Source of the DNA: Lepidodermella squamata
Taxonomy: Eukaryota; Animalia; Gastrotricha
Direction: 5' to 3'
DNA: 64,000 nucleotides
Assembly (NCBI GenBank): GCA_047495785.1
Contig: JBLDXI010000048.1
Location: 620,001 to 684,000 of the forward strand
Part shown: positions 1 through 28,000 of the stretch, one piece after another
Layout of the letters: the number at the start of each line of letters is the position of its first letter
Numbering within the stretch: the stretch's first letter is position 1
Program-made: the position numbers and the translations under genes
The notes under the pieces: generated by a model
Databases searched by the model: none
Seen by the model: the letters and a program-made list of their open reading frames with translations, nothing else
What the model was told of the DNA's origin: nothing

Positions 1-2270
1 CTGATTTGATTGACGCCAGCAATATAAATGCTGTAATCACTACGATTTCCACCCTCCAGAAGCTCGCCGCGTTGAGATGATTCCTCCACTGAAATCGACC
101 GACCAACTGGGACTTCCAATTGATACTCCAAGCAACTGGAATCCTTATCCATGGTGATCCAACGCGACTCGCACGGATTCGGACATACGGTGCCAACAAA
201 TCGAATAGAATGATAATTCTAAGACAAAAAATTCTTACACGAAGAAAAACAACTATTTTTAGCAACTTACGTCAGGAGGAATGAGATTATTTGACGGGTA
301 ATAGTCGATTGCCTTATCGAAGAAGTAGCAATTACCCATACCAACATCGGCTAGCAAAAGCAGAAGAGATTTCGGGGCACATTTGGCTGACCCAGCTTTT
401 TGAACGCACGGCATTGCCGAATCGTAAAATCGATCAACATGCGAATAATCATGCAGACCATGACGCAAAATCGCCGGAAAATCAGCCAGCGCAGCATGCT
501 CAAACCACAGCAATTTATGATTAGAAAAACTTGCGTGAACAAAGCGATGACCAAACGCCGCATCAGCTTCTCGATCGACGCGAAAAATCGATCGAATTTT
601 GATTGACCCATCGAAATCTCGAGTCGAATTTCGCAGATACGCATCAATTAACTCGATTTCATTGCCATCAATTTTGAACTCCAGCTCTTCAATTCTCGTG
701 TTTAAAGCTTCGTAAAGCTGACCAGCGTCTCGACCCATCTGATGAGTAATGTAAAGCCGATGGAGACGAGCCATTAGAGCCATTTTATCTCGAATAATTC
801 GCCTGTTGTCCAACGCTGTAGGCCGGTCAAGGCCGAAATTGTGCGGGATTAGCTCCTAGAATGCACTCGAAGCTTGTTCGACGAAGCGTATCTGCTTTTC
901 CTCGCCGATTTGATTGAGCAAATCTTTAAGAATATGATCGGCCTTTTCAAGAAGCCGTTGGCCGTCTCGCTGGTTCGCCAAAATTTGGGACATTTGATCG
1001 GCATCTAGGCCAAGATCCTCGCGAAGTTCTCGCTTCGCCTCTTCAGGGTCGAACATTTTGGCGACAAGGTCTCGAACTGCGGGTGAAGCTTTCTTATCGC
1101 CCAGCTCTTCATCGTCTCTATTTGATTGCATCAAAGTCGAAATATCGATAGGCTCATTTGACGGGTCGGCTAAAGGCACCGGTTGGTATTTGTAAGCCGT
1201 CACTTGCCCTGCTAAGGACAACTGACCTTTTCCCTTTTCCCATAAACGACCGGTTTTGTCGAAGAAAAACTGCTCAAATTTTCGCTCAGCCGATGTTGCA
1301 TTCGGGAATTTATCCACGGTGTAGCTGCCAATTTCGGTACCAATCCGACCCCAACTTCGCAAAACCCACCACGATTCTCTAAATGCTGAAATTTCAAAAT
1401 AGTCTAACGGAAAATTTAGTTCGTCACTTTTGATTAGATTCGAAAAGCTGAATCTTGTAGAACGAATTTCGACCCATGCTAATCGAAACTGAGTGAAGAA
1501 GGCACTGCCAACTTGTCCCATCAGCGTCCTTGTAGATATGAGCCTCTTTCTTTAATCCTGGAAAAAATTCGAAAAAAATTACCGAAAAACCCGAAATTCG
1601 GGATCCTACCTTCAAGCTCAGGATCCGAGGCTGGAAACTTTGTCCTCGCTCGCTTGTCATGCGTCGCTTCTTCCAGCTCGTCCTGAATCTCGACGAGTAA
1701 ATCGTGTTGGTCACGCATGGTTGAATTCGCATCGCTTGACAATCGCTTTCGATGCGGCGAGATCAAATTCAACGCGATTTCACGGTCTTCTGGCTTCAGC
1801 TGATTGTAGCCAGGAATTGACGTGATATCTGAAGCGTGACGTAGGTCGCTTTCTAAACACTTGGCGTGGTGCCAAACGACGCGTGACGACGCCGGTTCCA
1901 TTTTACCGACTCGAAATTCGCTCATCTGAATCGGCGAGTCGCAAATTTTACACTTTGACCGGTTGCTTTTCGAGTAGTCAAAAATTAGGCTATCATCGTG
2001 GCGAGGTTCGATTTTGAGGCGTAGCTCGATTTTTTGCTTATCAGCCGGTTCTAAATAACTGAAACCACTTATGTCGCGAGTTGATTCGAGACTCGAGAAG
2101 TTCGATTTGCGTTTCCAGAAACAGTCGAAATGGTGCCATTGAGGAATTTTGCCGTCGAAAAACATCGATTGAACCATGCGGCCGAGCCGCAGCTCGCCGA
2201 TATCGATCAAATCGCGGCAAACTCGACATCGCGATCGGCCGCTTTTAGCATATTCAGCGCAGTATTCCAT
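1..2270 (-). pseudogene. PARP1-like paralog C: ZnF-ZnF-WGR-regulatory-degenerate catalytic domain, with an in-frame TAG; runs off the window edge
   Basis: Exons 2270-1610, 1557-1428, 1378-271 and 218-<1 join in frame via GT-AG. Motifs present: PARP zinc fingers (EYAKSGRSRCRVC; DYSKSNRSKCKIC), WGR (RSWGRIG) and LIPHNFG. TAG at 856-858 replaces the Tyr of the conserved FYSLIPH. Catalytic motifs are altered: LLWFEH vs LLWHGS, and DYSIYI vs LYNEFI. Confidence 0.8.
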
Positions 2271-2960
2271 TATAAATTATTATCTTGGTAATTTCTAAGA
2301 AAAAAGGGAAAATTGAAAAGAGGAACAAAATTTTGCCAAAAATTAAGAAGTCGAAGATGAAGAAAAAATTCAAAAAATCTAAAATTGTCAATGCTGCTGT
2401 TTGCAAGGTAAATGATGAAAAAATCAATAGAAATAAAGGTACTTCTCGATAGAGCTTCAACAAATTCAAAATAATTTGTGCGAATTTTCCCGAATTTCAA
2501 AGTTTTAGCCAACTGATGAACTAATTCCGGAAATTAAAAAAAAATTCTGAATTTAAATTTTTTGAAAACTTCACAGTGAATAATTCGTTGAAGTGAAATG
2601 CCACTTTAGAAACAACGTTTTCTCCAAATTTGATATTCAATTTTCTTAATTTTAAATTGAAATTTTATGAAATTTCTCTTTCAAGCTCCATTCCTACTCG
2701 CAGTACTGTTGCCCAAAAAATGTTCTTGTGATCTATTAAATTTCAGCCATTTTTCAATTTAATTTGTAAAAATAAAAAAATAAAAAAGATCTTGCGATAA
2801 TAAAACAATTATTTTATTGTCTCCGCCTCTCGTTATCATCAATTATATTACAAAAGCTTATTAAGAAATAAGGTTAATTAAAAGAGTGAGAAATTCTAAG
2901 AAATTAAGTGATTAAAAAATGTTAGCTTTACGAAAATTCCAGCGCGTTGCCATATTAATT

Positions 2961-5900
2961 TCAGTCAACGGCCATTTTTTGCGGCTCGTCCGTCTGCGGC
3001 GTTTCGACGTCAGTCTCATCGATAGGGTAGTACCGACCAACGATGCGTTCAGCCGAAAATTGCCCCTTATTCCACTCAAGGCCGGTTTTATCCGTAAAAA
3101 CCTCTTCGAAATTGCGCTTAGCCGCGTCTTTCGAGTCGAAAACGTCGAGCTTGGTCGAGCCTATAGCGGTGGCAACGCGGCCCCACGACCGGTAGACCCA
3201 CCATACGGCGTTGTCGTTGGATTCGAACAGCTGGATTCGGTAGTAGAAATTCGATAGGCTCACCTCGGGAATTGAATGGAGTAAAACGCTCCAGACACAG
3301 CCGTCCTCTTCGAAGACGTGGGCTTCATCTTCCAAGCCTAAAAAATGTTCAAAAAGATTAATTATGTATGCATTTCTTGTGTTTGAAACCTAAATTCGAT
3401 TCAATTTTGAGAGATTTTCTTTTAATTAAAATGTTAATTTGTTTAAACTGATTTTTCAATTTATAATTACTTGATATTTGTTACCCACCAAGGTCATACC
3501 GATACTACAACATTATACGAATATTGCTGATTTTTATGTAGTTCTTGTTAAACTCTTTCTCATTTTCTCAAGTTGGCTTCTTCCTTTCTCAAATCAATCT
3601 CAGGGCCCATCGCAGTTGCGTATAGGGGCGAAAGACTAAACAAACTGCCTAATAGCCAGGTTATCGCAATCACGTCCTTTTCAATGGAGAATGGTGACCC
3701 GAATTCTCAAAATCAGGCTGATTAACATACATATCGATGATGAATTGAGTTGAACCAAACACTGAGCTAAGGTGCAAAATTACAACGCTCAATCGCTCAA
3801 ATCATCCCAATCACTGTAACTGCCAACAGCTAACTTCAAATTGAAAGGCTACGCAAAAGCTCTTCTTTGGACTTGTTTCTTGAAATTCACCGGCAATTTC
3901 TCAATTCTATCTTCCATCTCAGCTAGTCGCAAACGACTTGCAAACGGCAAGATACTATTTTCGTCCAGAATTTCCTCTGCTTTGTGTGGCCACAGCTGTC
4001 AACTTTTTTTAAGCCAACTGAATTTTTGAACAGAATTTAATTTTTTCTCGAAAGCGCTTGAAACTCTAGGGAATTTCCAGGAAACTTCAAGGTTCAGCAC
4101 GGAATATCTAATCAGTCCAAGTGAGCCAAAGTGTGTCATTATTGGAACCTTGGGTTCCAGCACTAAATTTCTCCAAATATGGTACCTAATCTTTTTTACC
4201 TATCTTAAATTTTTTCATGCCGATGTTGATTCCACGGGTCGGTTTTACAAATCAGTAATTTTTCCGATATTAAAGGTCATAGAGGCCTAAAATAAACATG
4301 TTTCTACCTAACTGGTACCGAGAAGCCAAGATAAACCCAGAGCCTCAGTATCAACAAAAGAAAATAAGCCAAAATAGCTATTCGGCGCTGGGAACTCGAC
4401 TTTATTGGTGAAAATTTTTATAGACTTATCTTTATTTTTGGAAAAAATCATAACAAGATTTTAATTGAGACTTGCCAGAAATAGGGAAATCAATCAAATT
4501 TCAAGTATGAATTATTTTCGAATTTTTAGAAGTACCTGATTCGGGATCAACCGTTCGCCGTGGTTCCACTTTCGGGCGTTTTTCCTCCACGCCTTCGCCT
4601 TTCTCGCCTTTTTTCGGCGACGACTCAATCGCCTCGGCCGTTGACTTGCCCAAGTGCCGGCCGCCGATTTCGTGGGACGCGGCTAAACAGCGGCGAATCC
4701 GGGCCGCCACGTCACTGCCGCAATTCGAAACCAGAGCGTGACGCTCGACCAACTCAGCCAACCATACCGAGCCGTTGTGTTTCGCCTCGTGGTACGAGGC
4801 GGGGTCAGCGACGAGGCGACCGGCTTGAGCGGCGGCAACACAGTCATCCACAAAATCCTAAAAAATAACAAAATTCATAAAATGAAAATGAAAATGAAAA
4901 ATGGTGATTTCATTTGAAATTTTTGAAAATGTTTGCAAGTTTTTTCCATTTTTTTAAATTGAAAAAATCGACAGAAATACAGCAAAATTTTGAAAAAAAG
5001 ATTACCTCGCCCACGACGTGAACATCGGCTTTAATAGCAGCTCGGACGTGGGTGCTGTGTGAGCCGATGCGAGCCTTGTAGTCGGAGACAACAGCCGCCA
5101 CGGTCGTGTCATCAGGTTCCGGTACAATAGTGGCGCCGAGGCGAACCAGGTCCTCGCGCACCTCGGCCAGCGAGCGGCGCTGCATGCGACCCGCAATGAA
5201 AAATCGAAGGTTATTCAACGGCCTTTCACCTAAAATAGTGAAATAGTAAAATTTAAAATGTTATCGTGAATTGGAAACATTTCCAAGTAATATTGTGGAT
5301 CCAAAAAAATTTCGAATTTTGAAAAATTTTAAAAAATTCAAAAAATTTTAAATTTTAATTTTCACCTATTATTCACTTTCAAATTCAATATCTGGTCTCA
5401 TTCCGTGAATTTATTAATTTACCTGATTCGAGCAAGGGCGGAGGTCGGAAGGCCGCTAAGTGGGGTGATTTTTGTTCCTTCACCTCGTCGCCCCCACTCC
5501 CCTGCTCCATCGGCTGCTCCTCCTGCTCGCGATTTTCCTTTTGCTGATGTTGTTGCTGCTGCTCATGTTCCATTTTTCTCGATTGGCGCCGAGCAATGAT
5601 CCGCCGAGCAGGGCCTTCAGACACCTCGCCTTCCTCGTACTCTTCCTCGCCTCCAGCCTCTTCCTCCCGTTCCCTCTCCCTCTCCGCCTCCTCCGGCTTC
5701 ATCGTCTTGATACCTTCACCCCGGAAATCAGCGGCGACATGCGGTTTGAAGGTCGTCGTAGTTTTTTGATGATGCTCCTCCTCATCGCCAAGACCAGAAT
5801 CTCGGCCAGGTCGGTTCTCTTGGTCACCACCCTTGGGGGTCTGCTTAGGTGGCATCTTACCACCCAGGGCTTCGACCAATCGCCGCTTGTCGTGGTCACG

Positions 5901-6709
5901 GAGCGTGTTGAATCCGGCGATTTGTTCGAGTTTCGCATTGGACGGAAAGTCCAGCTCGTGCCGATTCGCTACGAAGCATCTGATGTGGTGATACTGAATC
6001 CGGGGTCCGTACATCAATGCATGTTCGGTATCCACTAAAAATCAAAATTTCAAAATTGTCAAATTTTGAACTTCGAAAATGTCCGAAATTAGGTCAATAA
6101 ATACCGTCATGTTTTCCGATTCGAACATCGCCCATGTTGATGTTTTCATCGCAAGCCCGGCACCGGCTGCCACGTGACCTAGCATAGCCGATTTTAAAAG
6201 TTCGAAGACCGGCTCGATGGGCGCCAGCCTCGAGTGCCGCCTGCGCAGCTTCCGGCACCCTTTGCTTCTCAGTTCCAATTTCGCCAGCAAGTTCCGATGC
6301 TTCTTCTTCTTCCTCGGTCGTCTCACCCGCAGTATGCATACCTGAAAAATTTAAATTTTAGAATTTAAATAAATATTTCAAATTTTTGTAATTTGAAGAA
6401 TTTTTAAATTGAAAGGTTCAGCCAACCGTGAATAGCTTCTTCCATAGCTTGCTGGTCAGCGGTACGTAAATCACGCCAATTTTCGAATTCGTTCAAACTT
6501 TTGACGGTATGTTCGCGCCAGAAGCATGAAAAGTGAAAGTATTGCGGCGTTCGCGCGTCCGGAACCGTTGCCGCATCGGGCATTTCAGCCAAGCGTAACG
6601 ACCCGTCGGCAATCATGTTGTTACACCGGTGGCAGTGCGAACCGCCACTTTTCGCGTACTCAGCTTTGTAAGGCCGGTCGTGGCTGGATTTCGGCTCGGA
6701 TCGAGTCAT
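2961..6709 (-). CDS. PARP1-like paralog B, 684 aa: ZnF-ZnF-acidic/Q-rich linker-BRCT-WGR, no regulatory or catalytic domain
   Basis: Exons 6709-6427, 6341-6105, 6034-5423, 5229-5006, 4857-4536 and 3337-2961 total 2055 nt and all junctions are phase-compatible. Motifs [27 protein letters not shown] and RSWGRVAT; BRCT-like segment aligns to the neighbouring PARP1. TGA follows the WGR domain. Confidence 0.85.
3615..3795 (+). pseudogene. Degenerate 28S (LSU) rRNA-derived fragment in an intron
   Basis: TATAGGGGCGAAAGACTAA (3621-3639) matches a conserved LSU motif. It is followed in collinear order by ATTCTCAAA and TGAACCAAAC...TAAGGTGC...ACGCTCA, resembling later LSU segments, with deletions. Confidence 0.65.
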
Positions 6710-7774
6710 TATGTTCGAGTTGCGAGTTGACAAAAATTCTGAAAAAGGTCGTGCTAACAGCGATAAAAAATGACGTTGTGCGGCTGTGATTGTCTACGAA
6801 CCAATCGAACAATGTTCGGATTATGATTGCGTAACAAAGTTGAAATCTTATGCTTACATCTTTCCAGCAGTTGCGTAACTGTGACCCCATTTTTTCAAAA
6901 TTTCTCTCAAATTCCATGACGTTCAAAGTTAATTCAACTTTTATTATATAGATCGCCGTTAATTCTGGCTCAGTCAGATAAATATACCTTTACGCGGGGT
7001 TACCTATGAAACGATAGGAGTAACAGGTTCTTAACCTTTTTAGGTGTTTTATTCATATTTAGCATGGATAATGAAAGTGGGAATTTTTGTGTTCTCGAAA
7101 ACCAAATCAAAAGTCGATCCGAATTTAGGGCAGATCTATCAAAATTACCCACAACTTGAAATTTTTCAAGGTTAGGCAGACACGAGTTCTAAATTGCCAC
7201 GAAATCAAGCTTAAATATTGAAATAATTTGCGAAGGAAAACAGGAATTCCCATGTGGTTCACGTTTCTCGTGAATAACATCACGTTTTTCGCACAAGCTG
7301 CTCATCGTTACCCCTCGCTACCGGGTGGGTTTGCGATGAATCCCGATTCACTCACCGTGTTACTTCGATGAAAAACTCTGCAAGAATATTTTCAAATTTC
7401 CCTTTATTTCATACAAGATATTCGATACAATCAACCGGAATATAGGCTCACAAAATTATTAATATACTGAAAAATGGCATAACGAAACGAAAAATCAAGA
7501 GCAGGTAATGTTCGCAACAACCGTAAAACATTCATTATCACGAGCCCACTTCTTCAAACAACAGGCGTTGCAGCAATTTCAAACTAGTTTCAGCTCAAAT
7601 TTTTCCGTGGAAATTCGCTCAAGAAAAACGAATTTTTTATTACACGCGTAATTTTTACAATATTATTATAATATCACTGCGTAATGAGGTTATATAGAAA
7701 TGAAAAATGTTCATGGCATTGTCAATATGGTCTCTGATATTTTGTGCATAAAATGTCCGACTTGAATGTGTTAT

Positions 7775-10700
7775 TCAAACGCTGTATTTGAAGTCGAGTT
7801 TCAGCAGATAGCGCAGGCGGATTTGAGCCTCGTCGTACACGATGAATTCGTTGTAGAGCAGCGACGATCCAGCAGCGCCCGACTGTTTGGGCTTGCCACA
7901 GGGCACCGTGATTTCGTAACCGGCGTCAGCCACCGGCAACTGTGCGGCGCCATTCGGATCGGGACACGTCATGCCACAGCCTTTGACCGAATGAAATCCC
8001 TGAAAAAAAGCAAAAAATTACATTTCAAGTACGAAAATCGAAATTATGAGAAAATATTTTAGAGATGTGAAACTCGAAAACCCATATTTCAGGTGATTAT
8101 TCAAAAATTAAATTCGAAATTTCAAAAAACCTCAAATAAAATTGAAAAAGCCTCCTTAATTTGTTTTATTTGTTTCAAATTTTCGCTGAATTTTCGGACG
8201 TTTGTGTTTCGAAAAAATTGATAAATACCTGAGGCGCTTTGCTGAAGCTCTTCGCATGTAGAACCTCGTGAGGGTTTCCGAGAGCCACGTCTGATAGCAG
8301 CAACAGGCCCGTGTTGTTCATAGCTGAGGTGAAGCAGTAATTCGCCGATTTCGAGACCATATCGGCGAAATAAACGCCCTTTCCGAACATGTAACCAGTC
8401 GACGGCGCTTCAGGAGGCGCAATCCTCAGACCTAAAAATTATCAACATTCATTATAAGATGATCAGAAAAATTCCAGATGAGTTCAAAATTTTATTATTG
8501 AAAAGCTCGCCAAAATTGGCCATACGTTCGCAACCATTTGTAATTTTTGACATTTTTTTAGGAATATAAACAAATTAAGCCCACTGGGGAATCTTCTATC
8601 CTTTATCCACAATTTTACCGAAGAAATAAAAAATTTACCGGAGAAAACCCTGAAAACCCCGATGGTAACTGGTTCAGTAATTTTCGGTTTTTACCAGGTT
8701 GGATAAAATTTCTTCGGATTTTTTTTTCAACCCCATTAAAAAGAGAAATACTTGAATTTTGGAAATTTTGGATAAAACATGGTTTTGTCCAAAATTACCC
8801 CGCATGACGGCAGCTATTAATCTTTTTACGCATACCTTGACTGAGAATGCCGACAAAATTGGTGAGACGCGACCCGTGCCACAACAGCTGGTGGTTATGC
8901 AGTTTATGGAACGGCTCGAACCGACCCGCCTCGCCGCTGCGATCCACCCGAAACACGTCCTGGACAACCAGTTTGTACTGCGAATGCGTGGCCGCATGCG
9001 TGTTCTTGACATACCGCTCCAACAGCTTGAACTCATCACTCGCTTTGTCGACAGGGACGATTTCAGTTTTCAACTGCTTGTAGTGAACGTCCAAGGGGTC
9101 TTCGGCGCCGCTTTGCCCGGAATCGGACAGCATTCGATAAGCGAGTTCGATTTGCATCAGTTCGTCGAGCATGGTCGTTTTGTCTTGAATCGCCTTCAAA
9201 GAATCGATGAGAGGCGGGGCATTCATGCCGAAATCGTGCGGGATCAGCGAGTAGAAGCGGTTTGAAGCGTCGATGAAGACATACTGCTTGTTCGAGGCGC
9301 CATCGCTGGGTGGGTTTTCGATAGCTTTTTGCAGATCGGATAACACGGTATACGCCTAAGAAAATTTAGAAAAATTAAATTTAAATTTTCCCTATTGCTT
9401 TTAGGCGCCAGCCCTGTGGCTGGAATGCTGTCTAATTCGGTGCTAGTCGCACGAACCTACGCAATTTTTATTCGATTTATCGGCTCGTGCGCAATTTGGA
9501 AACCCAATATGGTTATGGGCCCCGGAAGCGAAGAATTCAAGGTTGTACTCAACGACACGACCAACCTGGCCGCTTGGCGGAACCAGATGTTTCATTCGAA
9601 AGGTGCGCTGGAAATCATGACGGGAACCGCTGAACCGCCGGCTGATGGTAAGAGCGAGCGTTGGTGGACGATCCTCAATGGCGAGATCCGCTACGCAATC
9701 GCGCGAACGATTGGTGAACACCTTACGTTCATCATCAATGATAACTATTCGGCCGTGAAGTGTTGGAATGACGTCAACGCCGCCCCCACGCTCGACCATC
9801 CACTCGGAGTCGTCCAGTCGCTGGTGGCTTACCGCGATTTACCTGTTTTTCGTTTAGGGACTTCGCCCGATGCCCACATCGCAATTTTTAGGAAGGTCCT
9901 TAACAAATTGAAGTCGCAGCAAGGCGGAGATTCTTTTTACAATCAAGAAATCCTGGCAAAATTGTTTTTCGCAACTCTGGCGATCCAAACGGAGGGCTGC
10001 AAGAACTTTGTTTCAAATTACCTAAAAGATAACGCAACTTTGATCTTGGTGAATATTTTTACTCGCTTTAGGTTGGAGTATGCCATCCAGATTGCTGCTC
10101 GCAACGAAGTTCTGCCTCCGAACGTGGCACTGGTCGTCGGGGATGCAGGTGAAGGCCTGGCATCGCCTGAGACTGCCCGTTGCGGACACGCCGCTAGTAG
10201 CTGCACTGTTTGTCGACGCACCGTAACTGCCTGTTACGGCTGCAATAAGATAGGTCATTATTTGGGAGAATGCATGAATCCAATTTTTGTTGACGGCTTC
10301 CCCAAGTTTTGCCTTATAAGCTTAGGTCTGGTTATCGCCCGCCAAAGTCGACGCGTCCGTCCGCGCCGCAGCACCATCCGAAGCGACTGAAAGGTGGTTT
10401 TCGTGGCATGGATCGATTTCCAGCCCACAATGCGTTTCTCCGACATCGACAAAGGGCAAATGTCGATTACGAGAACTATTGTTCAAGAGCCCGCAGTCAG
10501 CAACCGAGCTACCACCGTGACTTTCGCAACACCCTCGAATGTCAGTTTGTTATCCTCCATGCCGTTCGACACCGGCGTCTATTCGAATGAACCGTCTTTC
10601 AACACCACTCAAATGTCAGAGCCTCAGTATGGCCTCAATTCACGGTTCAACCGGCTGGTGATTCTCTTGCCGGTTTTTCCGTCGCGGTCTTCGGAAAACC

Positions 10701-13700
10701 CGTTCTGTGTCTAGAGTTTCAATCAATGTTTCTGGGCGCGAGGGTGATTCGGTCGGGCAAAAAAGGCAAGCGGGCTATTACAAAAATGCCAAGTTCAAGT
10801 CCTAGAAATAACTTCTTCGTGTCTGTTGCAGTAAGCCCAACGCGGGGTCTCGTGCACTATGAGATCAAAGAACTCGTGGTGACTACACGAAACGTTATCT
10901 ACCGAGCATTTCGGTCAGTTTTCTTATTGTTTAATGTTCAAGGCTGTCTTCAAGAGAAAAGCGAGCCGAGTTCGGGCTGATCCTTCAAAAGCTCGAGCGA
11001 CCGCGGGGATCCTCTATCGCTGCTCTTTTAAATCTTTTCCTTCGATGAAACAACTGATTATTCCCTTTCATGCTTTTGGACTTCAGCTGGGAGCAGAATA
11101 TTAAATAAAAAACTATACAAACACTATCTTTCCAGTCTTCTTGAACGCGCCATTAAGGATCTTAAAGGTTTTGATTGTTTTAGCACGCAAGGAATCACCC
11201 ATGCTAATAATTATCCTCTTATGTTCGGAAAGCTGACTAAACTGACCACGTCAATTTGAATCAAACCAGCCCCATTAAAAAATTGTAATACAAACCTGTT
11301 GAATTTGCGACTTGCTCAACCGACCAAGTGGCATTTTCTTCAAATCAATCTCCATCTCAGCCATGATTTTCTTCATCATTTTGACGTCGAAGATCAACCG
11401 GATCAACTCCTGAACCTCCTTCGGCAGCTTCGACGACCCGCCGGCCTTGTCCAGCGACAAACTGCTCGCCTGGTCATCAGGGTCGACCCCGAAATCAACA
11501 TCGACCGGGTAGAAACGGCCTGGGATTTTCTGGCGAGAAAACGCGCCCTTATTCCACGGATTGCCGGTTTTTTCGAGGAACACCTCTTCGAAATTGTCTT
11601 TAGCCTTGTCCTTACTCGAGTACCTCTCAAGTTTGTTACTGCCAATAGTTGTGCCAATTCGACCCCAGGCTCGGAAAACCCACCAAGTTTTCCTGAAAAA
11701 TGAGGAATAACTTATCAAAAATTAAGAAAAAATTCGAAAAATTACTTGGTATCACTTTCAATCAATTGAAGCCTGTAGTAGGAATTCATTTTGTTTTCGA
11801 TCGACACCAAATTGAGGACGCAATTCCAAATGCAAGAGCCTTCTTCCAGCACGTGAGCTTCGTCGTCCAAACCTTGAATGAAAAATTACGAGATAATGTC
11901 ATGTCCAACTGAAATCTGTCCCGTTCGGCCACGGTAACGACCGATCGACTTTGTAGTCAAGTTGGCTTTTCGAGCCGTGAAAAATTGATGTACGGACGCA
12001 AAGTGAGGCGACGATCGGCTATTCTGACCGCCGCCTGTATCGAATAGTCCGAAAATATGACGGAAAATAATACGCGAGATTGCTCGAAAAAGGCAGCAAA
12101 ATTGGGTAAAAAAACTACTTTTTGTTTCAGTTTCGTATTTACAATAAAATTAGTCAATTAAATGCAATTAATTTTTTGGCTTTTTTCAATTTCTGAACAA
12201 TTTTTGAATTGCAAAACAAATTATTTTCATTTTTCGATTTAGAAACTTTTCGTAAAATTTTCGAAAAATTTAACAATATTTGTAATTCATTTTAAACCAA
12301 TTTTAAACAATTTTAAACAAATTTTAAACAAAATACCAAATTCATTCTCCCGTGTAAAGATCGAGCCGCACAATTCCGACATATTTTTTTTTAATATTTT
12401 TTCAAAAAATGAACTAACCTGAGTCTGGATCAACAGCCGACCGGCCTTTGACCTTGAACTTTTTCGTTTCTGGGCCGCTCTTATAATCCGATTTCAGGCC
12501 CGATTTCAACGCAGCAGTTGATTTTGCAACAATACCCATCGACTTCGCCAAATTCAACCGAATCCTCGAATTTACATTACCACCGCAATTCGGCACAATT
12601 TGATGTTTCACAATTAAATCAGCCAGATTTGTGAACCCATCTGGAACTGGGTCCGCAGGTTGACCCGGCTCTTGAACGATAACCTTCAATTTCGAAGTTT
12701 TCGCCACTTCAAGGACTTCGGTGATAAATTCCTCGCCGACAACGTGGATATCGGCAGTTTCGGCTGATTGGATGATTTTCGATTTCGCAGAGCCTTTTTT
12801 CGCCTCGGCTGAGCTCGTAACCAGGGCGATGACCGTGCCGTCAACATCAGCGGCTATTGTAGCGCCCAAATTGCTCAAAGCCTGGCGTAATTCGTTGACA
12901 GGCCGCGTCATTCGACCACTGACAACAAATTTCAGCAGAGATAACGGTTTGGAATCGTCAGTTTTCGAAGTAGCCTCCTCCTTTTTCACAGGATTAACGC
13001 GATCTGGCGGAAAAATTCGCTCTCTCGCCTTGTATTTATACTTTTTGAAAATATCGACCGATTCTTTGAGGTCGTCCGGAAATACCATCTTTTTCCGTTT
13101 CGGGGTCTTGGTTTGATAGGCGCATTTCGCCCATTCAGTCATTTGACCAGTGCAACGATAGGCATTGCACGTATCTGAGTGGACTAAATGACCCTTTTTA
13201 CATTCAGGGCACAGGGCTAAAGCGCCGAATAACAGACAATCAGCGAGTCGCTCGATCAGTTTGCCGGCCTCCGGCACGTGCTGGTCGTTGAATTCGAGCA
13301 ATTCTTTCATATCTCGCGTGCTCAAATCTGAATTTTGTAATTTATCGCGAACTTCCCAGATTTCTTTGTTCTGTAGTTTTAGTTGCTCGGCGAGATCGTC
13401 CTTCGATTTTTTATTCTCGACAGCGGTCGATGTTGTTGAGATCGAATCTTCGTTATCCGGCTCGTCCTTGGCCTTGCGTTTTTTCGACGTTTTCTTGCCG
13501 TCCTCTTTGTCTTGATTTGTTACACTCTTCGGCCGCGATGACTCGCCCTTTCCGAGTAGGGTGACCAATCGCTGTTGGTCTTCCTTCTCGAGCTGCGCAA
13601 ATCCGGCGCACGTTTCGACATTCAGTTCCGTCGTGAAGCCGAGATCGACGCGTTTATCAACAAAACATTGAACGTGGTGCCACAGCGTCTGAAAAATCAG

Positions 13701-14574
13701 TCAAATTACGATTCAATAGAAAAGCCCAACAAGTAAATATTGATTGATTCTGAAGTATTCATATCGAAAAATTTTCGATCAAGTTTTTCGAAAAATTTGA
13801 CATTTTTTAGCATTTCCGAAATCAGAATGAGATTTGTGCGATTCAAATTTTTTGGAAAATTTTTATTATAAATATATTCTATGATAAAATCAACTAACTC
13901 GTATTATTATCATAATAAAAATACTATTTGATTTCAACTAAATTGACAACTGCAAGAATCGGTGTAATATGAGAGCATAGTTCGCCTTTATACCCTGTTG
14001 AGTTATTTCATAACTAAATTTTACAGATCCGCCATCGAAATTCGGCTATATTCAGTATTCTCACCTGAGGTCCGTACATCTTCGCCTGGTCAGACTCGTA
14101 GTCCATTTTCCCTAACCGAGCTTCATTTTTCGGAATTTTCTCCTCGCAAGCGCGGCATTTGGACCCGCCTGATTTCGCGTATTCCACCTTAAAATCTCGT
14201 GTCCCGGAATCATCAACTGCTGCTGCTGCCGCGGCGCCTTTTTTGCCCTTGCCTTTGCCTTTTCCGGACGAGGCAGCCGCATCTCCACCCGCGGCCCCAC
14301 CTCCTCCGATTTGCTTCTCAATTTTCTGCTGATCTTCCCACCGCAATGAGTGAAACCCGTGGATATCTTCTGTCTTCTGAACTCGAGCCTTCTTCCAAAA
14401 ACACGCGTAGTGGTACCAATTGGGCATTTTCCCGTCGAAATGCGGGCTCTGGATCATGACCGCGAGGCGTAGCGAGTCTTGAGAAATAGTTTCCTTGCAC
14501 CCGCGACACCCTGCCCGGCCACTTTTCGCGTATTCGGCCCGAAATGGCAAGTCTTTCGCGCCATCATCTGCCAT
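7775..14574 (-). CDS. PARP1: Poly(ADP-ribose) polymerase 1, full length (ZnF1-ZnF2-ZnF3/PADR1-BRCT-WGR-regulatory-catalytic)
   Basis: Exons 14574-14065, 13688-12419, 11872-11746, 11692-11296, 9355-8836, 8431-8229 and 7999-7775 are phase-compatible. Motifs [63 protein letters not shown] and LLYNEFIVY; the H-Y-E triad is intact. Confidence 0.97.
9509..10390 (+). mobile_element. Ty1/copia-type gag ORF with primer-binding site, antisense within PARP1 intron 4; no pol or paired LTRs seen
   Basis: GGTTATGGGCCC at 9511-9522 is the copia-type PBS (half initiator tRNA-Met). The N-terminus [15 protein letters not shown]...P is copia gag-like. The zinc knuckle [14 protein letters not shown] fits CX2CX4HX4C. 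Confidence 0.8.
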
Positions 14575-23158: not shown

Positions 23159-25059
23159 TGGAGTTCGGCAATATCACATAAAACTGGTTGCTAGTTTTCA
23201 ACTTTCGATTTCAAGGTCTATTAAACTAGAATACGTATTTCCCACCGACATTTTTTCATAGTTGATGGAAACTTTGTCACACCGACATTTATATCACACC
23301 GGTTCATCAACCGGTTTTTTGGCGTCATTATCAGTTTGCACCTTATGGGCTTTGAGGCGCGCGCGCATTTATATAAAACGGAAATTTCGACTTATTCTCT
23401 ATTGTATTGAATTTTGTCCAAACCAGCGCGAAATTCACTTTCACTTCCGAGCAAAACATCAAAAAATCGTATGTTACAACCAACGCTGGAAAACTAAATT
23501 TGTTTATCAAGGGGGATGGTCCTATTTTTCTATTGCAAGCGATCGGTTCAGGTTTCAAGTGCCAATGCGGCTGGAAAGGGTTCCAGCCGGCCGCGATTTT
23601 TTACCTAAGCAGAGCGTAATTGCTTGAGAATTAGATTTTATTTCATCCGCCTGTCATCACCAATAGATAAAATTTGGTAGAGCTATATCGAAAAATCGCT
23701 GATTTTTTAAAATCGATTACTGAATCGATATCAAGGTGGAAAATAACTTTTTAGCCAATATGCGCGGAATAATAAGATCTGCTTGTTACGCAAAATGAAA
23801 CAAATTAGAGCCTTGAAAAAATAGTATTCTTTGAAAAATCCGCTGACCTATTGATAATCCATCTATTTTCAAGATTTTTTTCAAAAGTTGATTTTTCTTT
23901 CGTAAATACCTGCATTATGAATGGAAACTGCCCTTACGCAAGCGCGTGCGGAATTTTGTTTTGGAAAAAAACAATGATATGAATTTGCTCATTTCACAGC
24001 AAAAAATACAGATTGGTTTCAATGTTTTCATTTTAACCTCCAAAACTTTCCAGCATCTTTACAAAACGCAATCATGACCCAGTTTAACCTTATTAACTTC
24101 GCACAACCGCGCTTTTTAACGGAAAATCGTGCCGCTTCGCCTTATCTCTACTGCTTTTCCCCCGATTCTTCGGAAATATCCCGAAAAATGCTCTATAGGG
24201 CTCCCGCTTCCCGCTGAGTCCCGCTGAATCACGTTATATTTTCGAAATAAAATCTCCAAAATAGCAATATTTATATATTTTTAATATTATCCAAGCTGAA
24301 TTAATATTGACGATGAGGTCGAAATTTTCGCAGCAATTTATCGTAATTAATTCTTGATAGCCGGGATTATATTTTATGCGATAAATTTTCCTCTCAAGCC
24401 AATATTGCCGGCTTGACTCTTGCTTCTTTTAAAATAAAATAGGATATTGTTACCGTGTAAGATTTCAACCACCAACGATAGGGTAAAAAGAGGGAGGTGA
24501 AATATAATGACCCGCTCGAGACTTTGATTAGACTTGATAATGAACCAGACTAAGACACCGGATGCTACCTTGTTTTCCTGTTACCATCTTGGGCGCGTGC
24601 CACCCGGAAATCGTCATGTATTATGAAAGTAAATACGAATTTTTAAATTTTCCAATCAATATAAATGGGAAAAAATTTCAAAAAATTTAGGAAAAAATAT
24701 ATTGCCGATAAATCCGCTTTTTAAGAATTACCAATTATTCATGTATTTTTTTACTCATTTTTCGAATAATTTTTTCTTCGTGTCCTGTTTTCGGAAAAAC
24801 TTTGTAAACAAGTGCTACTAAGTGTTTTTTTCAAGTAATCGCGTGTGGCACGCGTCTCGATCGGCCCCGGTGCGCAACAATTGCGTTTTTCACGGAATAG
24901 CCGAAACGCGTGCCGTCACGTTATCAACCTAACAAATTTCATTCACACCAATCAGTTTTATTTTTTATCATTTTAAATAATTTCGTTTTAGTAGATATAG
25001 CTCTATTTTAACCATAAAACCCAAAGCAGCATATACTCAGTTTGTTTTTGCGTTACACA

Positions 25060-28000
25060 ATGGCAATTTCACCCGGGGAGTTGCCAATGATATTGGTATT
25101 GTTACTCGCCGGTTTCCTCGCCAGTGCCAAGGCAGCATCAGCCCGTGCCGAAGCATTAGGCGATATGGGAGATGATATCGACTTGCTGCCGACGTTCTCG
25201 CATCAGCTGCATCGAGAACGGCGAGCTATCTCAAACTTTGCCGGCTTTTTCTCTCAAACGACATCGTTCAGTACGACCGGAACAAGCGCATGCACTGGCA
25301 ATCAAGGAGGCGGGTACCACAATTCCTACATGAGCAGCTTCATGTGTCCGCCTGATACGAGGAGATCGCTGTCCTCGACCTCCTTGTGGCCGTACTCCCG
25401 CTTCGCTTCCTCAACCCAATACTGTATGAGCAGCATGGCTGGGTGCTGGCGTGCGCAAGGTGATCCGAATTTCGGCTCTGCGGTATTCTTCACGGTGTTG
25501 AACAATGGCCGAAATACAACTGTCAATTGCTTCAATACCAACGTCACGGACTGTGGGCCGAATTACGTATCAACAACTTTCCCGATGCTGTGTCGCTATA
25601 GCGACGCTGTCAACTCAGCCCCGCTGCAAACTTGTTACTTCAGGGTCTGCTACAATTATTCTGGCCCGCAAGATGAGTTCGGTGGTGTTTTCTCAACCTG
25701 TGATTCGTGTGCTGGTCTAGCACCGGGTCACCCCTGCCAACCAATTGGGAATGCTGCCGCTAACAACGAAGCGCGCTGTCCGCTGGGCTTTATTGCTGAG
25801 CCGGTAACTGACTTTTTGTCTACGACTATGGACTGCTTAACAAAGGACAACGTCAAAACTTACTGCCAATACACGATGTGGTACTGCCGCAACAACATTG
25901 GTGGCGAGAAGGGTGGAAAGGGTGACAAAGGAAACGACGGAAGACCCGGTGTTGACGGTAAGCATCTGAAAATAGTATCCTAATCATCTTTCCCCTGCTA
26001 ATGAAATATCAGGCTGTAACAAAAAAAATTAAATTAAAACGTTCAACCTAAGAGGTCAAGCCAAAACCGCTCAACCTGCAACACGGGTTATCTTTTTTTC
26101 TTCAAAAATGCTGCGGACATTTGTTATCATAAAAAACTAAAAATGTAATATACAAATTATTTAATTTATTAATGTCATAAAAAGTTGTAATTAAAAAATT
26201 TTCACCTTGAAACCAAATATGCGCGCTAAATTTCAAAATTGTCAGTTGCCAAGATCGACGTTTACTCGGTAGTGTCAGAGATTGACTTCCTCTAACTTGA
26301 ATGATGAGCTAGTGGTGTTCATGCCTAAGTCTAGCTGAATTGACGCTCTAATACGTTTAGTGCTTGAAATTATCGATGCTGTCTCTCGTGTACTTACCAA
26401 TATTACTTACCATACTAACCATAATCCTCTACAATATTGATTATTGATTTGCCAGCAATTGAATGTCTATTTTTCGTCTCTTTTTCTCTCAGGTTACAAA
26501 GGCAATGAAGGTAAGTTGAAGTAAACATGTACCTGTTAACAATTTCTACGCAACATTTTCGAACAGGTTGCCCTGGTCCTTCAGGTCCAAAAGGTACACA
26601 TTTTGCTTGTCATTGATGATTTGGTGTGATTATTTTATTCTTCTTTAGGTTCCAAGGGTGATGCCGGTGTGAACGGAACCAAGGGTATCGATGGTATGTG
26701 GTTTTACCAAGAAAAAGGCTCTGTTTAATGTATTATCAATTTCAAAGGCTACAAGGGCGTTGACGGCAGACCCGGTACACCCGGCGGTCCTGGTTTGTTA
26801 CACTGCGCCAAAATACAGCGTTTATTCACTTTGGTTTTACCTTGATAGGTCCAAAGGGAGAACCTGGTTGCGATGGAAAAAACGGCACACCTGGTTTTAA
26901 CGGTACTGATGGCACCCCCGGTAGTGCCGGCACCCAGGGTTCCAAGGGTGACAAAGGAGATCAAGGAACGCCTGGTGAAGGAGGTAATTTTCATCACTGC
27001 CGTGTAATGATTTTGGCTGAACTGCTTATTTTTGTGCGCAGGTGTTAAGGGTCAAGAAGGTACGGTTGTTTCCGCCTGAAATGGGCTAATCACCTGCTTG
27101 ATTTGGTTCGTAGGTTGCCCTGGCGCTCCTGGTCATAAGGGTGCGAAAGGTGACGCTGGTATCGATGGTAAGTTAACATGATAATCTGAATAAATTGTCT
27201 ATTGAATGCATCCTTTCCGTATTAAACAGGATCGAAAGGTAACTTGAAATTCACCGATGAGGTATTCGATTCAATATATTTCTGGCGTCGTCAGGCGAAG
27301 CTGGTCTGAACGGAAAGAACGGTTGTCCTGGTTTGTTTAAATTTTATTATTTTAATTTTTTCGAACCTGCATGCTGATTTTTTTACCAGGCACGAAGGGA
27401 GATCGCGGCTTCGAAGGTCCTATTGGTGAGTGATTTTTTCTATTATAAAATAGCTTTCGTCATAAAAAAAATGATTCTACTTAGGTCCTGAGGGTCCGTG
27501 GGGATCGAAAGGTGGCCGAGGCGATATTGGCTCCAAGGGTGACATGGGTTTGTTTTATAATGATTTATTTCCGCGTTCTACATCATCTTCGTTTTAAAGG
27601 CTCCCAGGGCAGCAAAGGCCTAAAGGGTGATCAAGGATCTAAAGGCGTACAAGGAAGCCAAGGATCTAAAGGCGCCCAGGGCAGTCAAGGCAGCAAGGGT
27701 GCCCAAGGTATGAAATATCTATTATTTTCTCTAAATTTCTAGCAATTATTATCTATTTTCACAGGCTCTCAGGGCAGCAAAGGTGCCCAGGGAAGCCAAG
27801 GCTCGAAAGGCGCACAAGGAAGCCAAGGATCCAAGGGTGCTCAAGGTAGGCGCATCTCAATAATGCGCTTTTTGATTACTCAAATTGCTTTATTTCTATC
27901 CAGGCTCCCAAGGATCGAAGGGCCACCAGGGAGACCAAGGTTCCAAGGGCAACAAAGGTATGTGTCTGAATAAACTATTTCACTTTGCTCATTCCTTTAA

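Follow-up and report, generated by a model that had tools for sequence, protein, structure and literature searches.

Three tandem PARP1-derived genes in a gastrotrich: a complete enzyme and two predicted non-catalytic paralogues

A stretch of 64,000 nucleotides from the gastrotrich Lepidodermella squamata (contig JBLDXI010000048.1 of assembly GCA_047495785.1, positions 620,001 to 684,000), here called the window, carries three PARP1-derived genes in its first 14.6 kb. The genes, designated A, B and C, follow one another head-to-tail on the minus strand and are separated by AT-rich spacers; each of them opens with an ATG of its own and a PARP-type zinc finger. A is a complete PARP1. To judge from their predicted proteins and their pattern of variation, B and C are old, lineage-specific and selectively maintained derivatives of PARP1, which are predicted to be non-catalytic and to keep the modules that contact DNA breaks.

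Domain anatomy of the three genes

The domain order of the genes was derived from six-frame open reading frames (ORFs) and from Pfam scans of those of exon size, and the gene models were built by enumerating GT..AG introns that preserve the frame and were checked against the paralogues. Single exons served as queries in database searches, and joined-exon models were used in local alignments and trees. The coordinates of the genes and of their main features are collected in Table 1. Beyond A, B and C, tblastn found nothing else in the window that resembles PARP1; a weak match of the catalytic region of A, at 24916-25331 on the plus strand, was dropped, as it is without Pfam support.

Two zf-PARP fingers (Zn1 and Zn2), PADR1 (Zn3), BRCT, WGR, PARP_reg (HD) and PARP (the catalytic domain, CAT) are all found in A above the Pfam cut-offs, and its H-Y-E triad is complete in an alignment with 16 named animal PARP1s. 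By this anatomy A is predicted to be a working, DNA-break-activated poly(ADP-ribose) polymerase.

B harbors Zn1, Zn2, an acidic and Gln-rich linker, BRCT, a BRCT–WGR linker and WGR, in this order, and its stop follows about 25 codons further on. Pfam recognizes Zn1 as zf-PARP with E = 2.4e-13, Zn2 in two parts, split across two exons (E = 1e-4 and 5e-4), and WGR with E = 6.5e-15. Between them the two fingers have all eight of their zinc ligands (CxxC...HxxC), and the MAFFT alignment shows that 20 of 30 near-invariant columns are kept in Zn1 and 15 of 18 in Zn2. Zn3 has no Pfam match in B, and only 3 of its 21 near-invariant positions are retained. The segment that in A comprises the nuclear localization signal and Zn3 is replaced in B by a disordered linker of about 149 residues, 36 of which are Asp or Glu and 14 of which are Gln. 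No relic of HD or CAT was detected by tblastn downstream of the stop of B or within its introns. The spacer that follows, 690 nt up to the ATG of C, has a GC content of 26% and holds the AATAAA of B.

C keeps Zn1, Zn2 and WGR, followed by a degenerate HD and a catalytic-like region. It lacks Zn3 and BRCT, and the gap between Zn2 and WGR consists only of a 45-residue linker. Its four introns measure 49–52 nt, and its last exon extends past the start of the window, so that perhaps 10–20 codons and the stop lie outside. The zf-PARP match of C reaches E = 1.4e-36 over two stretches and that of WGR E = 2e-10; here too Zn1 and Zn2 have their full set of eight zinc ligands, and 25 of the 30 near-invariant columns of Zn1 are kept.

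The C-terminal part of C is still related to a PARP catalytic region. From WGR through HD to CAT it shares 28% identity with A over 389 residues (tblastn). The Pfam PARP match is sub-threshold (E = 0.0099, 15.8 bits, where the cut-off is 26.7), and the scan misses HD and the last exon. A phmmer comparison with PARP1 catalytic domains in the PDB gives E = 0.006, and in protein-language-model features the clusters closest to it are without exception PARP catalytic families, which is a weak lead. The catalytic site was read from phmmer matches to solved structures, from a MAFFT alignment of 20 sequences that includes the 16 named animal PARP1s, and from the PARP1 of a metagenome relative described below. 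Both the His and the Glu of the triad are replaced, and the NAD+ donor site is reduced to a remnant (Table 1). Near-invariant columns survive at 26 of 91 positions in CAT and at 9 of 28 in HD, and the structural motifs of the ADP-ribosyltransferase (ART) fold that are left are LLW, AIL..GL, LLLLxDVxxG, PxP and YxIY. C would thus be best called a pseudo-PARP.

B and C have several further features in common. The conserved Arg of each finger, of the Arg34/Arg138 type that grips the phosphate backbone, and the W-G-R residues are kept in both. Their predicted proteins are acidic (isoelectric point, pI, of 5.5 for B and 6.0 for C), whereas A is basic (8.6). The linker between BRCT and WGR carries five KS motifs in A and one in B, and C is without such a linker.

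An earlier, sequence-only reading of this DNA had described three tandem same-strand genes derived from PARP1, namely a complete A, an intact B that stops after WGR, and a C whose catalytic-like region has the triad His and Glu replaced. The Pfam scans and exon models bear out this description, with the qualification that the change of Glu to Asp is conservative. Its further statement, that B and C retain the zinc fingers and WGR, stands for Zn1, Zn2 and WGR and fails for Zn3, which is lost in both, while C has also lost BRCT. On the predicted domain content, it is right to see in B and C two differently disarmed paralogues that keep Zn1, Zn2 and WGR beside one active enzyme.

Table 1. Coordinates of genes A, B and C and of their main features in the window.
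Feature	Position	Strand	Basis
Gene A, complete PARP1, 1083 aa, 7 exons	14574-7775	minus	Pfam and spliced GT..AG model
A exons	14574-14065, 13688-12419, 11872-11746, 11692-11296, 9355-8836, 8431-8229, 7999-7775 (including stop)	minus	
A LLWHGS motif with catalytic His	8870-8887	minus	
A Tyr motif GKGVYFAD	~8361-8384	minus	
A Glu motif LLYNEFIVY	7835-7861	minus	
AATAAA, 135 nt 3' of A stop	7636-7641	minus	
Gene B, 684 aa, 6 exons, pI 5.5	ATG 6709, stop 2961-2963	minus	Pfam and exon model
B exons	6709-6427, 6341-6105, 6034-5423, 5229-5006, 4857-4536, 3337-2961	minus	
B disordered acidic/Gln-rich linker, in exon 3	~5423-5870	minus	alignments
AATAAA, 145 nt 3' of B stop	2813-2818	minus	
Gene C, at least 688 aa, 5 exons, pI 6.0	ATG 2270, 3' end beyond base 1	minus	Pfam and model
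C exons	2270-1610, 1557-1428, 1378-867, 815-271, 218-1	minus	
C LLWFEH (A: LLWHGS): triad His to Phe, adjacent Gly to Glu, one residue inserted	496-513	minus	
C NAD+ donor-site remnant: 11-residue loop deleted; Tyr896, Lys903, Ser904 and Tyr907 positions replaced	406-459	minus	
C RSDYSIY (A: NEFIVY): triad Glu to Asp after a 4-residue insertion	24-44	minus	

Some further features of the locus, outside the coding exons, can be recorded beside these genes. Intron 4 of A (11295-9356) contains, antisense to the gene, an ORF of 331 codons (9395-10390, plus strand) with a CCHC zinc-knuckle-like motif (CxxC...HxxxxC), for which Pfam gives nothing even with E relaxed to 5. This ORF, possibly a Gag-like remnant of a retroelement, accounts for the unusual 1.9-kb length of the intron. 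Strong acceptor-like sites lie on the minus strand 35 nt upstream of the ATG of B (TTTTTCAG, 6745-6752) and 27 nt upstream of that of C (TTTTTTCTTAG, 2298-2308); just upstream of the ATG of A, unlike B and C, no such site was seen. These sites would fit introns in the 5' untranslated regions, or spliced-leader trans-splicing of a same-strand chain that comprises a calpain gene, a small nucleolar RNA host gene, A, B and C.

Origin and maintenance of B and C

A phase 1 intron at VDPxSG|L is common to A, B and C, and A and C have two more junctions in common, at ESxxK| (phase 2) and immediately ahead of the last exon (phase 0). These common positions and phases therefore indicate duplication at the DNA level and not retrocopies. 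Comparison of the three genes with one another shows saturation at synonymous sites (pS 0.6–0.9) and an amino-acid identity of 28–52% per domain, so that the duplications must be old and a duplication introduced by the assembly is excluded. The same saturation makes dN/dS among A, B and C uninformative as a measure of selection, and it was set aside for that purpose.

The 423-residue exon of A matched one protein (P0001, 52% identity), which is found on two ENA metagenome contigs (L001 and L002). The identity of A to the PARP1 on L001 is 55–73%, and on both contigs (6462-13683) a calpain gene precedes PARP1, the same order as in the window. The PARP1 of this relative has fewer introns, and a Tho1/MOS11-type gene lies 3' of it, in the place taken by B and C in the window. 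A search with P0001 retrieved full-length PARP1s, of which the nearest named ones belong to molluscs, a nemertean and an annelid and are about 40% identical, a set that suggests a spiralian lineage. Trees built with IQ-TREE under LG+C20 unite A, the metagenome relative, B and C in one clade with 100/100 support, which holds with B or C left out. The PARP phylogeny that the sequence-only reading had proposed as a check thus places B and C inside the lineage's own PARP1 clade. Within it, B and C are placed nearer to A than the relative is (support 84–89), and a clade of A and the relative is not rejected by the approximately unbiased (AU) test (p = 0.095), so that the duplications may have preceded or followed the split from the relative.

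A protein that seemed to be a natural counterpart of B was also considered. P0053, of 634 residues, extends from the zinc fingers to WGR, and the ORF that follows it on the contig encodes HD and CAT; it was rejected as an ordinary PARP1 that a frame error has cut in two. That contig (L003, JGI 3300019020, 57-3133) counsels caution when "truncated PARP1s" are mined from protein libraries.

Run X1 provides DNA contigs of two haplotypes at about 50x each, which tile positions 1-6000 in both haplotypes; the second of them may be a second assembled copy. The counts and absences given here hold among the differences listed, 40 of 87. The exons of C contain at least 35 haplotype differences, 22 of them synonymous and 13 non-synonymous. 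The neutral expectation is that about 71–78% would be non-synonymous, and the resulting pN/pS is about 0.16–0.25 (P <= 4e-5). C is under purifying selection and its neutral evolution is rejected. Exons 4, 5 and 6 of B are single collapsed contigs with no haplotype differences, and the 1.2-kb intron 5 that they flank has four single-nucleotide polymorphisms and eight indels. All indels that are not a multiple of three are intronic or intergenic, and the sole exonic one is an in-frame loss of 3 nt at 5548, in the Gln-rich linker of B. The frames of B and C, of about 690 codons each, are open over 11 exons, and all their GT..AG sites are canonical. Of the outcomes that the sequence-only reading had named as refuting it, neutral evolution is thus rejected for C and very unlikely for B, and an assembly artefact is excluded.

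The divergence between haplotypes is uneven. The differences in C fall within about 2 kb of exons (window 1-2270), and none is listed in exons 4–6 of B (window 2961-5239). Possible causes are tighter constraint on B, a sweep, gene conversion, and a block of divergent haplotype that covers C. Two introns of B show structural peculiarities of their own. In intron 3 (193 nt), 115 nt at 5303-5417 are missing from one of the X1 haplotypes, a presence/absence polymorphism confined to the intron. In intron 5, the summed contig depth in run X1 rises at 4201-4400 to about 6500, against about 100 elsewhere, and several contigs have loose ends at 4153-4270; this jump marks a repeat of high copy number, or a fragment of a transposon, within the intron.

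Proposed role and alternatives

The proposed model is that an old tandem duplication of this spiralian lineage's own PARP1, at the DNA level, gave rise to two extra genes that selection would have kept as non-enzymes. B and C retain the three modules that touch a break (Zn1, Zn2 and WGR), and they have lost Zn3, the one that relays break binding to the catalytic domain. In human PARP1, Zn3 is needed for this allosteric relay and not for DNA binding. Catalysis would be gone in two ways, as B ends after WGR and the HD/ART-like region of C appears to have a destroyed NAD+ pocket. The two proteins would then bind DNA nicks and ends without using NAD+ or synthesizing poly(ADP-ribose) (PAR), and by competing with A for breaks, or by shielding them, they would tune the amount of PAR signaling that a given damage load brings about. 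Three features may keep them exchangeable instead of toxically trapped: the acidic pI of both, the acidic linker of B, and the BRCT domain and single KS motif of B, with which it could still be ADP-ribosylated in trans by A.

Break binding, inactivity and competition with A are inferred here from domain content, and a role as competitor, adaptor or decoy, as the sequence-only reading had suggested, is plausible and fits the anatomy. That B and C are selected non-enzymes which compete for or shield DNA breaks, and so modulate PAR signaling, is judged fairly probable. A more specific proposal, which is put forward only tentatively, is that the trio constitutes a built-in rheostat of PAR signaling, in which two genetically encoded, non-catalytic break binders with complementary domain losses would, by capping breaks or competing for them, spare the cell PARP1-driven NAD+ collapse and death under massive breakage. 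If this is true, a dead PARP1 would have been made harmless and releasable by losing Zn3 and turning acidic, and B and C would represent in nature what PARP trapping and inhibition do.

Several observations weigh against a role in modulating PAR signaling at breaks. The DNA-contact loops are remodelled in one finger of each protein: in Zn1 of B the base-stacking loop has Val at the equivalent of Phe44 and one extra residue, and in Zn2 of C the loop is seven residues shorter, so that break binding may be altered. The end branches of B (2.2–2.6) and C (5.5–7) are 13–40 times longer than that of A (0.17), and such very long branches could also mean that the two genes have taken on a new function with no bearing on the regulation of PARP1. 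Neither B nor C was found by tblastn in the 6 kb downstream of the relative's PARP1 on L001. Relatives of the catalytic-like exon of C were found neither by word search, nor by phmmer against 1.84 billion representatives, nor in JGI metagenomes, and the JGI metagenomes yielded none of the WGR exon of B either, although this is weak evidence, as the species that carries B and C is itself absent from these libraries.

The rival that survives best takes up these points. B and C could have been neofunctionalized as sensors of nucleic acids or DNA ends, or as chromatin proteins, with a job unrelated to the tuning of PARP1, such as recognizing the DNA ends of transposons or viruses, or a role specific to the germline or to a developmental stage; conflict or a new target would then explain why they evolve so fast. 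The branch lengths, the remodelled contact loops and the shift of both proteins to an acidic pI are in agreement with it, and ZAP offers a precedent, as a paralogue of PARP12 that is inactive, evolves fast and keeps its nucleic-acid-binding zinc fingers (PMC8102003). However, the modules kept are exactly those by which PARP1 contacts breaks, with their ligand and grip residues, and what has been lost are the parts that serve only catalysis; nor has any tie of B or C to foreign DNA been seen here. Neofunctionalization of this kind is regarded as unlikely.

It could also be argued that B, C or both are unexpressed, decaying duplicates, pseudogenes whose frames are still open by chance. The catalytic region of C is indeed very degenerate, to the point that Pfam misses its HD and last exon, and the searched libraries hold no relatives of either gene. 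Against this, two frames of such length, with their splice sites and the eight zinc ligands, have remained intact despite saturated synonymous divergence, the pN/pS of C is far from neutral, and exons 4–6 of B are invariant next to a variable intron 5, with the sole listed exonic indel in frame. Decay is thus very improbable. Of similarly low probability is the view that C has remained enzymatic, either as a mono-ADP-ribosyltransferase or as an NAD+ binder with an unusual Phe/x/Asp active site. Its Asp is a conservative replacement of Glu, the structural motifs of the ART fold persist, and the protein-language-model features point to PARP catalytic families; but the equivalents of His862, Gly863, the donor loop, Tyr896, Ser904 and Tyr907 are all lost, as is Zn3, which PARP1 requires for DNA-dependent activation. 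Finally, that the trio is an artefact of assembly, or a single long gene read as three, has a negligible probability and no point was found in its favor, as artefactual duplication would yield near-identical copies and not such divergent domains, independent contigs of both haplotypes tile 1-6000, and each gene starts with its own ATG and Zn1, with AT-rich spacers in between and the stops of A and B followed by AATAAA.

Comparison with known systems

The sequence-only reading knew of no described animal system with this arrangement. No paper on non-catalytic PARP1 paralogues in an animal was found in the paper library searched, and to that extent the claim stands. Functional analogues exist, namely catalytically dead mouse PARP1 and the ZAP/PARP12 pair. 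A belongs fully to the canonical animal PARP1s, which form Clade 1B in the scheme of Citarelli et al. 2010 (PMC2964712), and B and C are derived forms that keep Zn1, Zn2 and WGR. B is without Zn3, HD and CAT, and C is without Zn3, BRCT and an intact H-Y-E triad or NAD+ pocket.

The closest parallel for a dead PARP1 in the presence of the active one is the mouse Parp1 E988A mutant, which is catalytically dead, acts as a dominant-negative and is embryonic lethal when heterozygous (PMC10401025). As is predicted for B and C, it is a break binder of the PARP1 type that is unable to make PAR and that stands beside an active enzyme, and C is altered at the same Glu. Unlike them, it is engineered, full-length and harmful, whereas B and C are natural, kept by selection, acidic and without Zn3. 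The loss of Zn3 and the acidity of B and C may blunt trapping.

The 24-kDa PARP1 fragment generated by caspases, and likewise the over-expressed DNA-binding domain (DBD), has been reported to be a trans-dominant inhibitor of PARP1 and of repair. B resembles a genetically encoded version of this fragment, in that it has Zn1 and Zn2 without catalysis and would likewise occupy breaks. The fragment is a proteolytic product of dying cells or an artificial construct, whereas B is a separate gene that also has BRCT and WGR.

ZAP (PARP13) exists in forms with and without a dead PARP domain, an echo of C and B. As in the trio, duplication of a PARP produced an inactive, fast-evolving paralogue with nucleic-acid-binding zinc fingers (ZAP and PARP12, PMC8102003). 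ZAP differs from B and C in belonging to another PARP clade, in its CCCH RNA-binding fingers and in its antiviral RNA target, and it is neither derived from PARP1 nor a break sensor. Among plants, the Clade 1D PARPs of the AtPARP3 type are WGR-PRD-CAT proteins of the PARP1 clade in which His and Tyr are replaced (PMC2964712), in likeness to C. They keep the Glu, unlike C, and have no PARP-type zinc fingers. In Drosophila, the Parp isoform PARP-e is reported to be enzymatically inactive beside the full enzyme; it is an isoform of a single Parp gene, whereas B and C are separate, diverged paralogues. A family-wide survey places loss of the catalytic triad within the PARP1 clade only in land plants (PMC2964712), and C would add a case from an animal.

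PARP1 is the main target of PARP inhibitors, and inactive PARP1 that is retained at DNA lesions is considered the cause of their toxicity. Two selected, predicted-dead and break-sensing paralogues of PARP1 beside the active gene would mean that such proteins can be both tolerable and useful. Several features possibly set harmless competition of this kind apart from toxic trapping: neither paralogue has Zn3, both have a low pI and B an acidic linker, only one KS motif is left in B, and C is without an automodification region.

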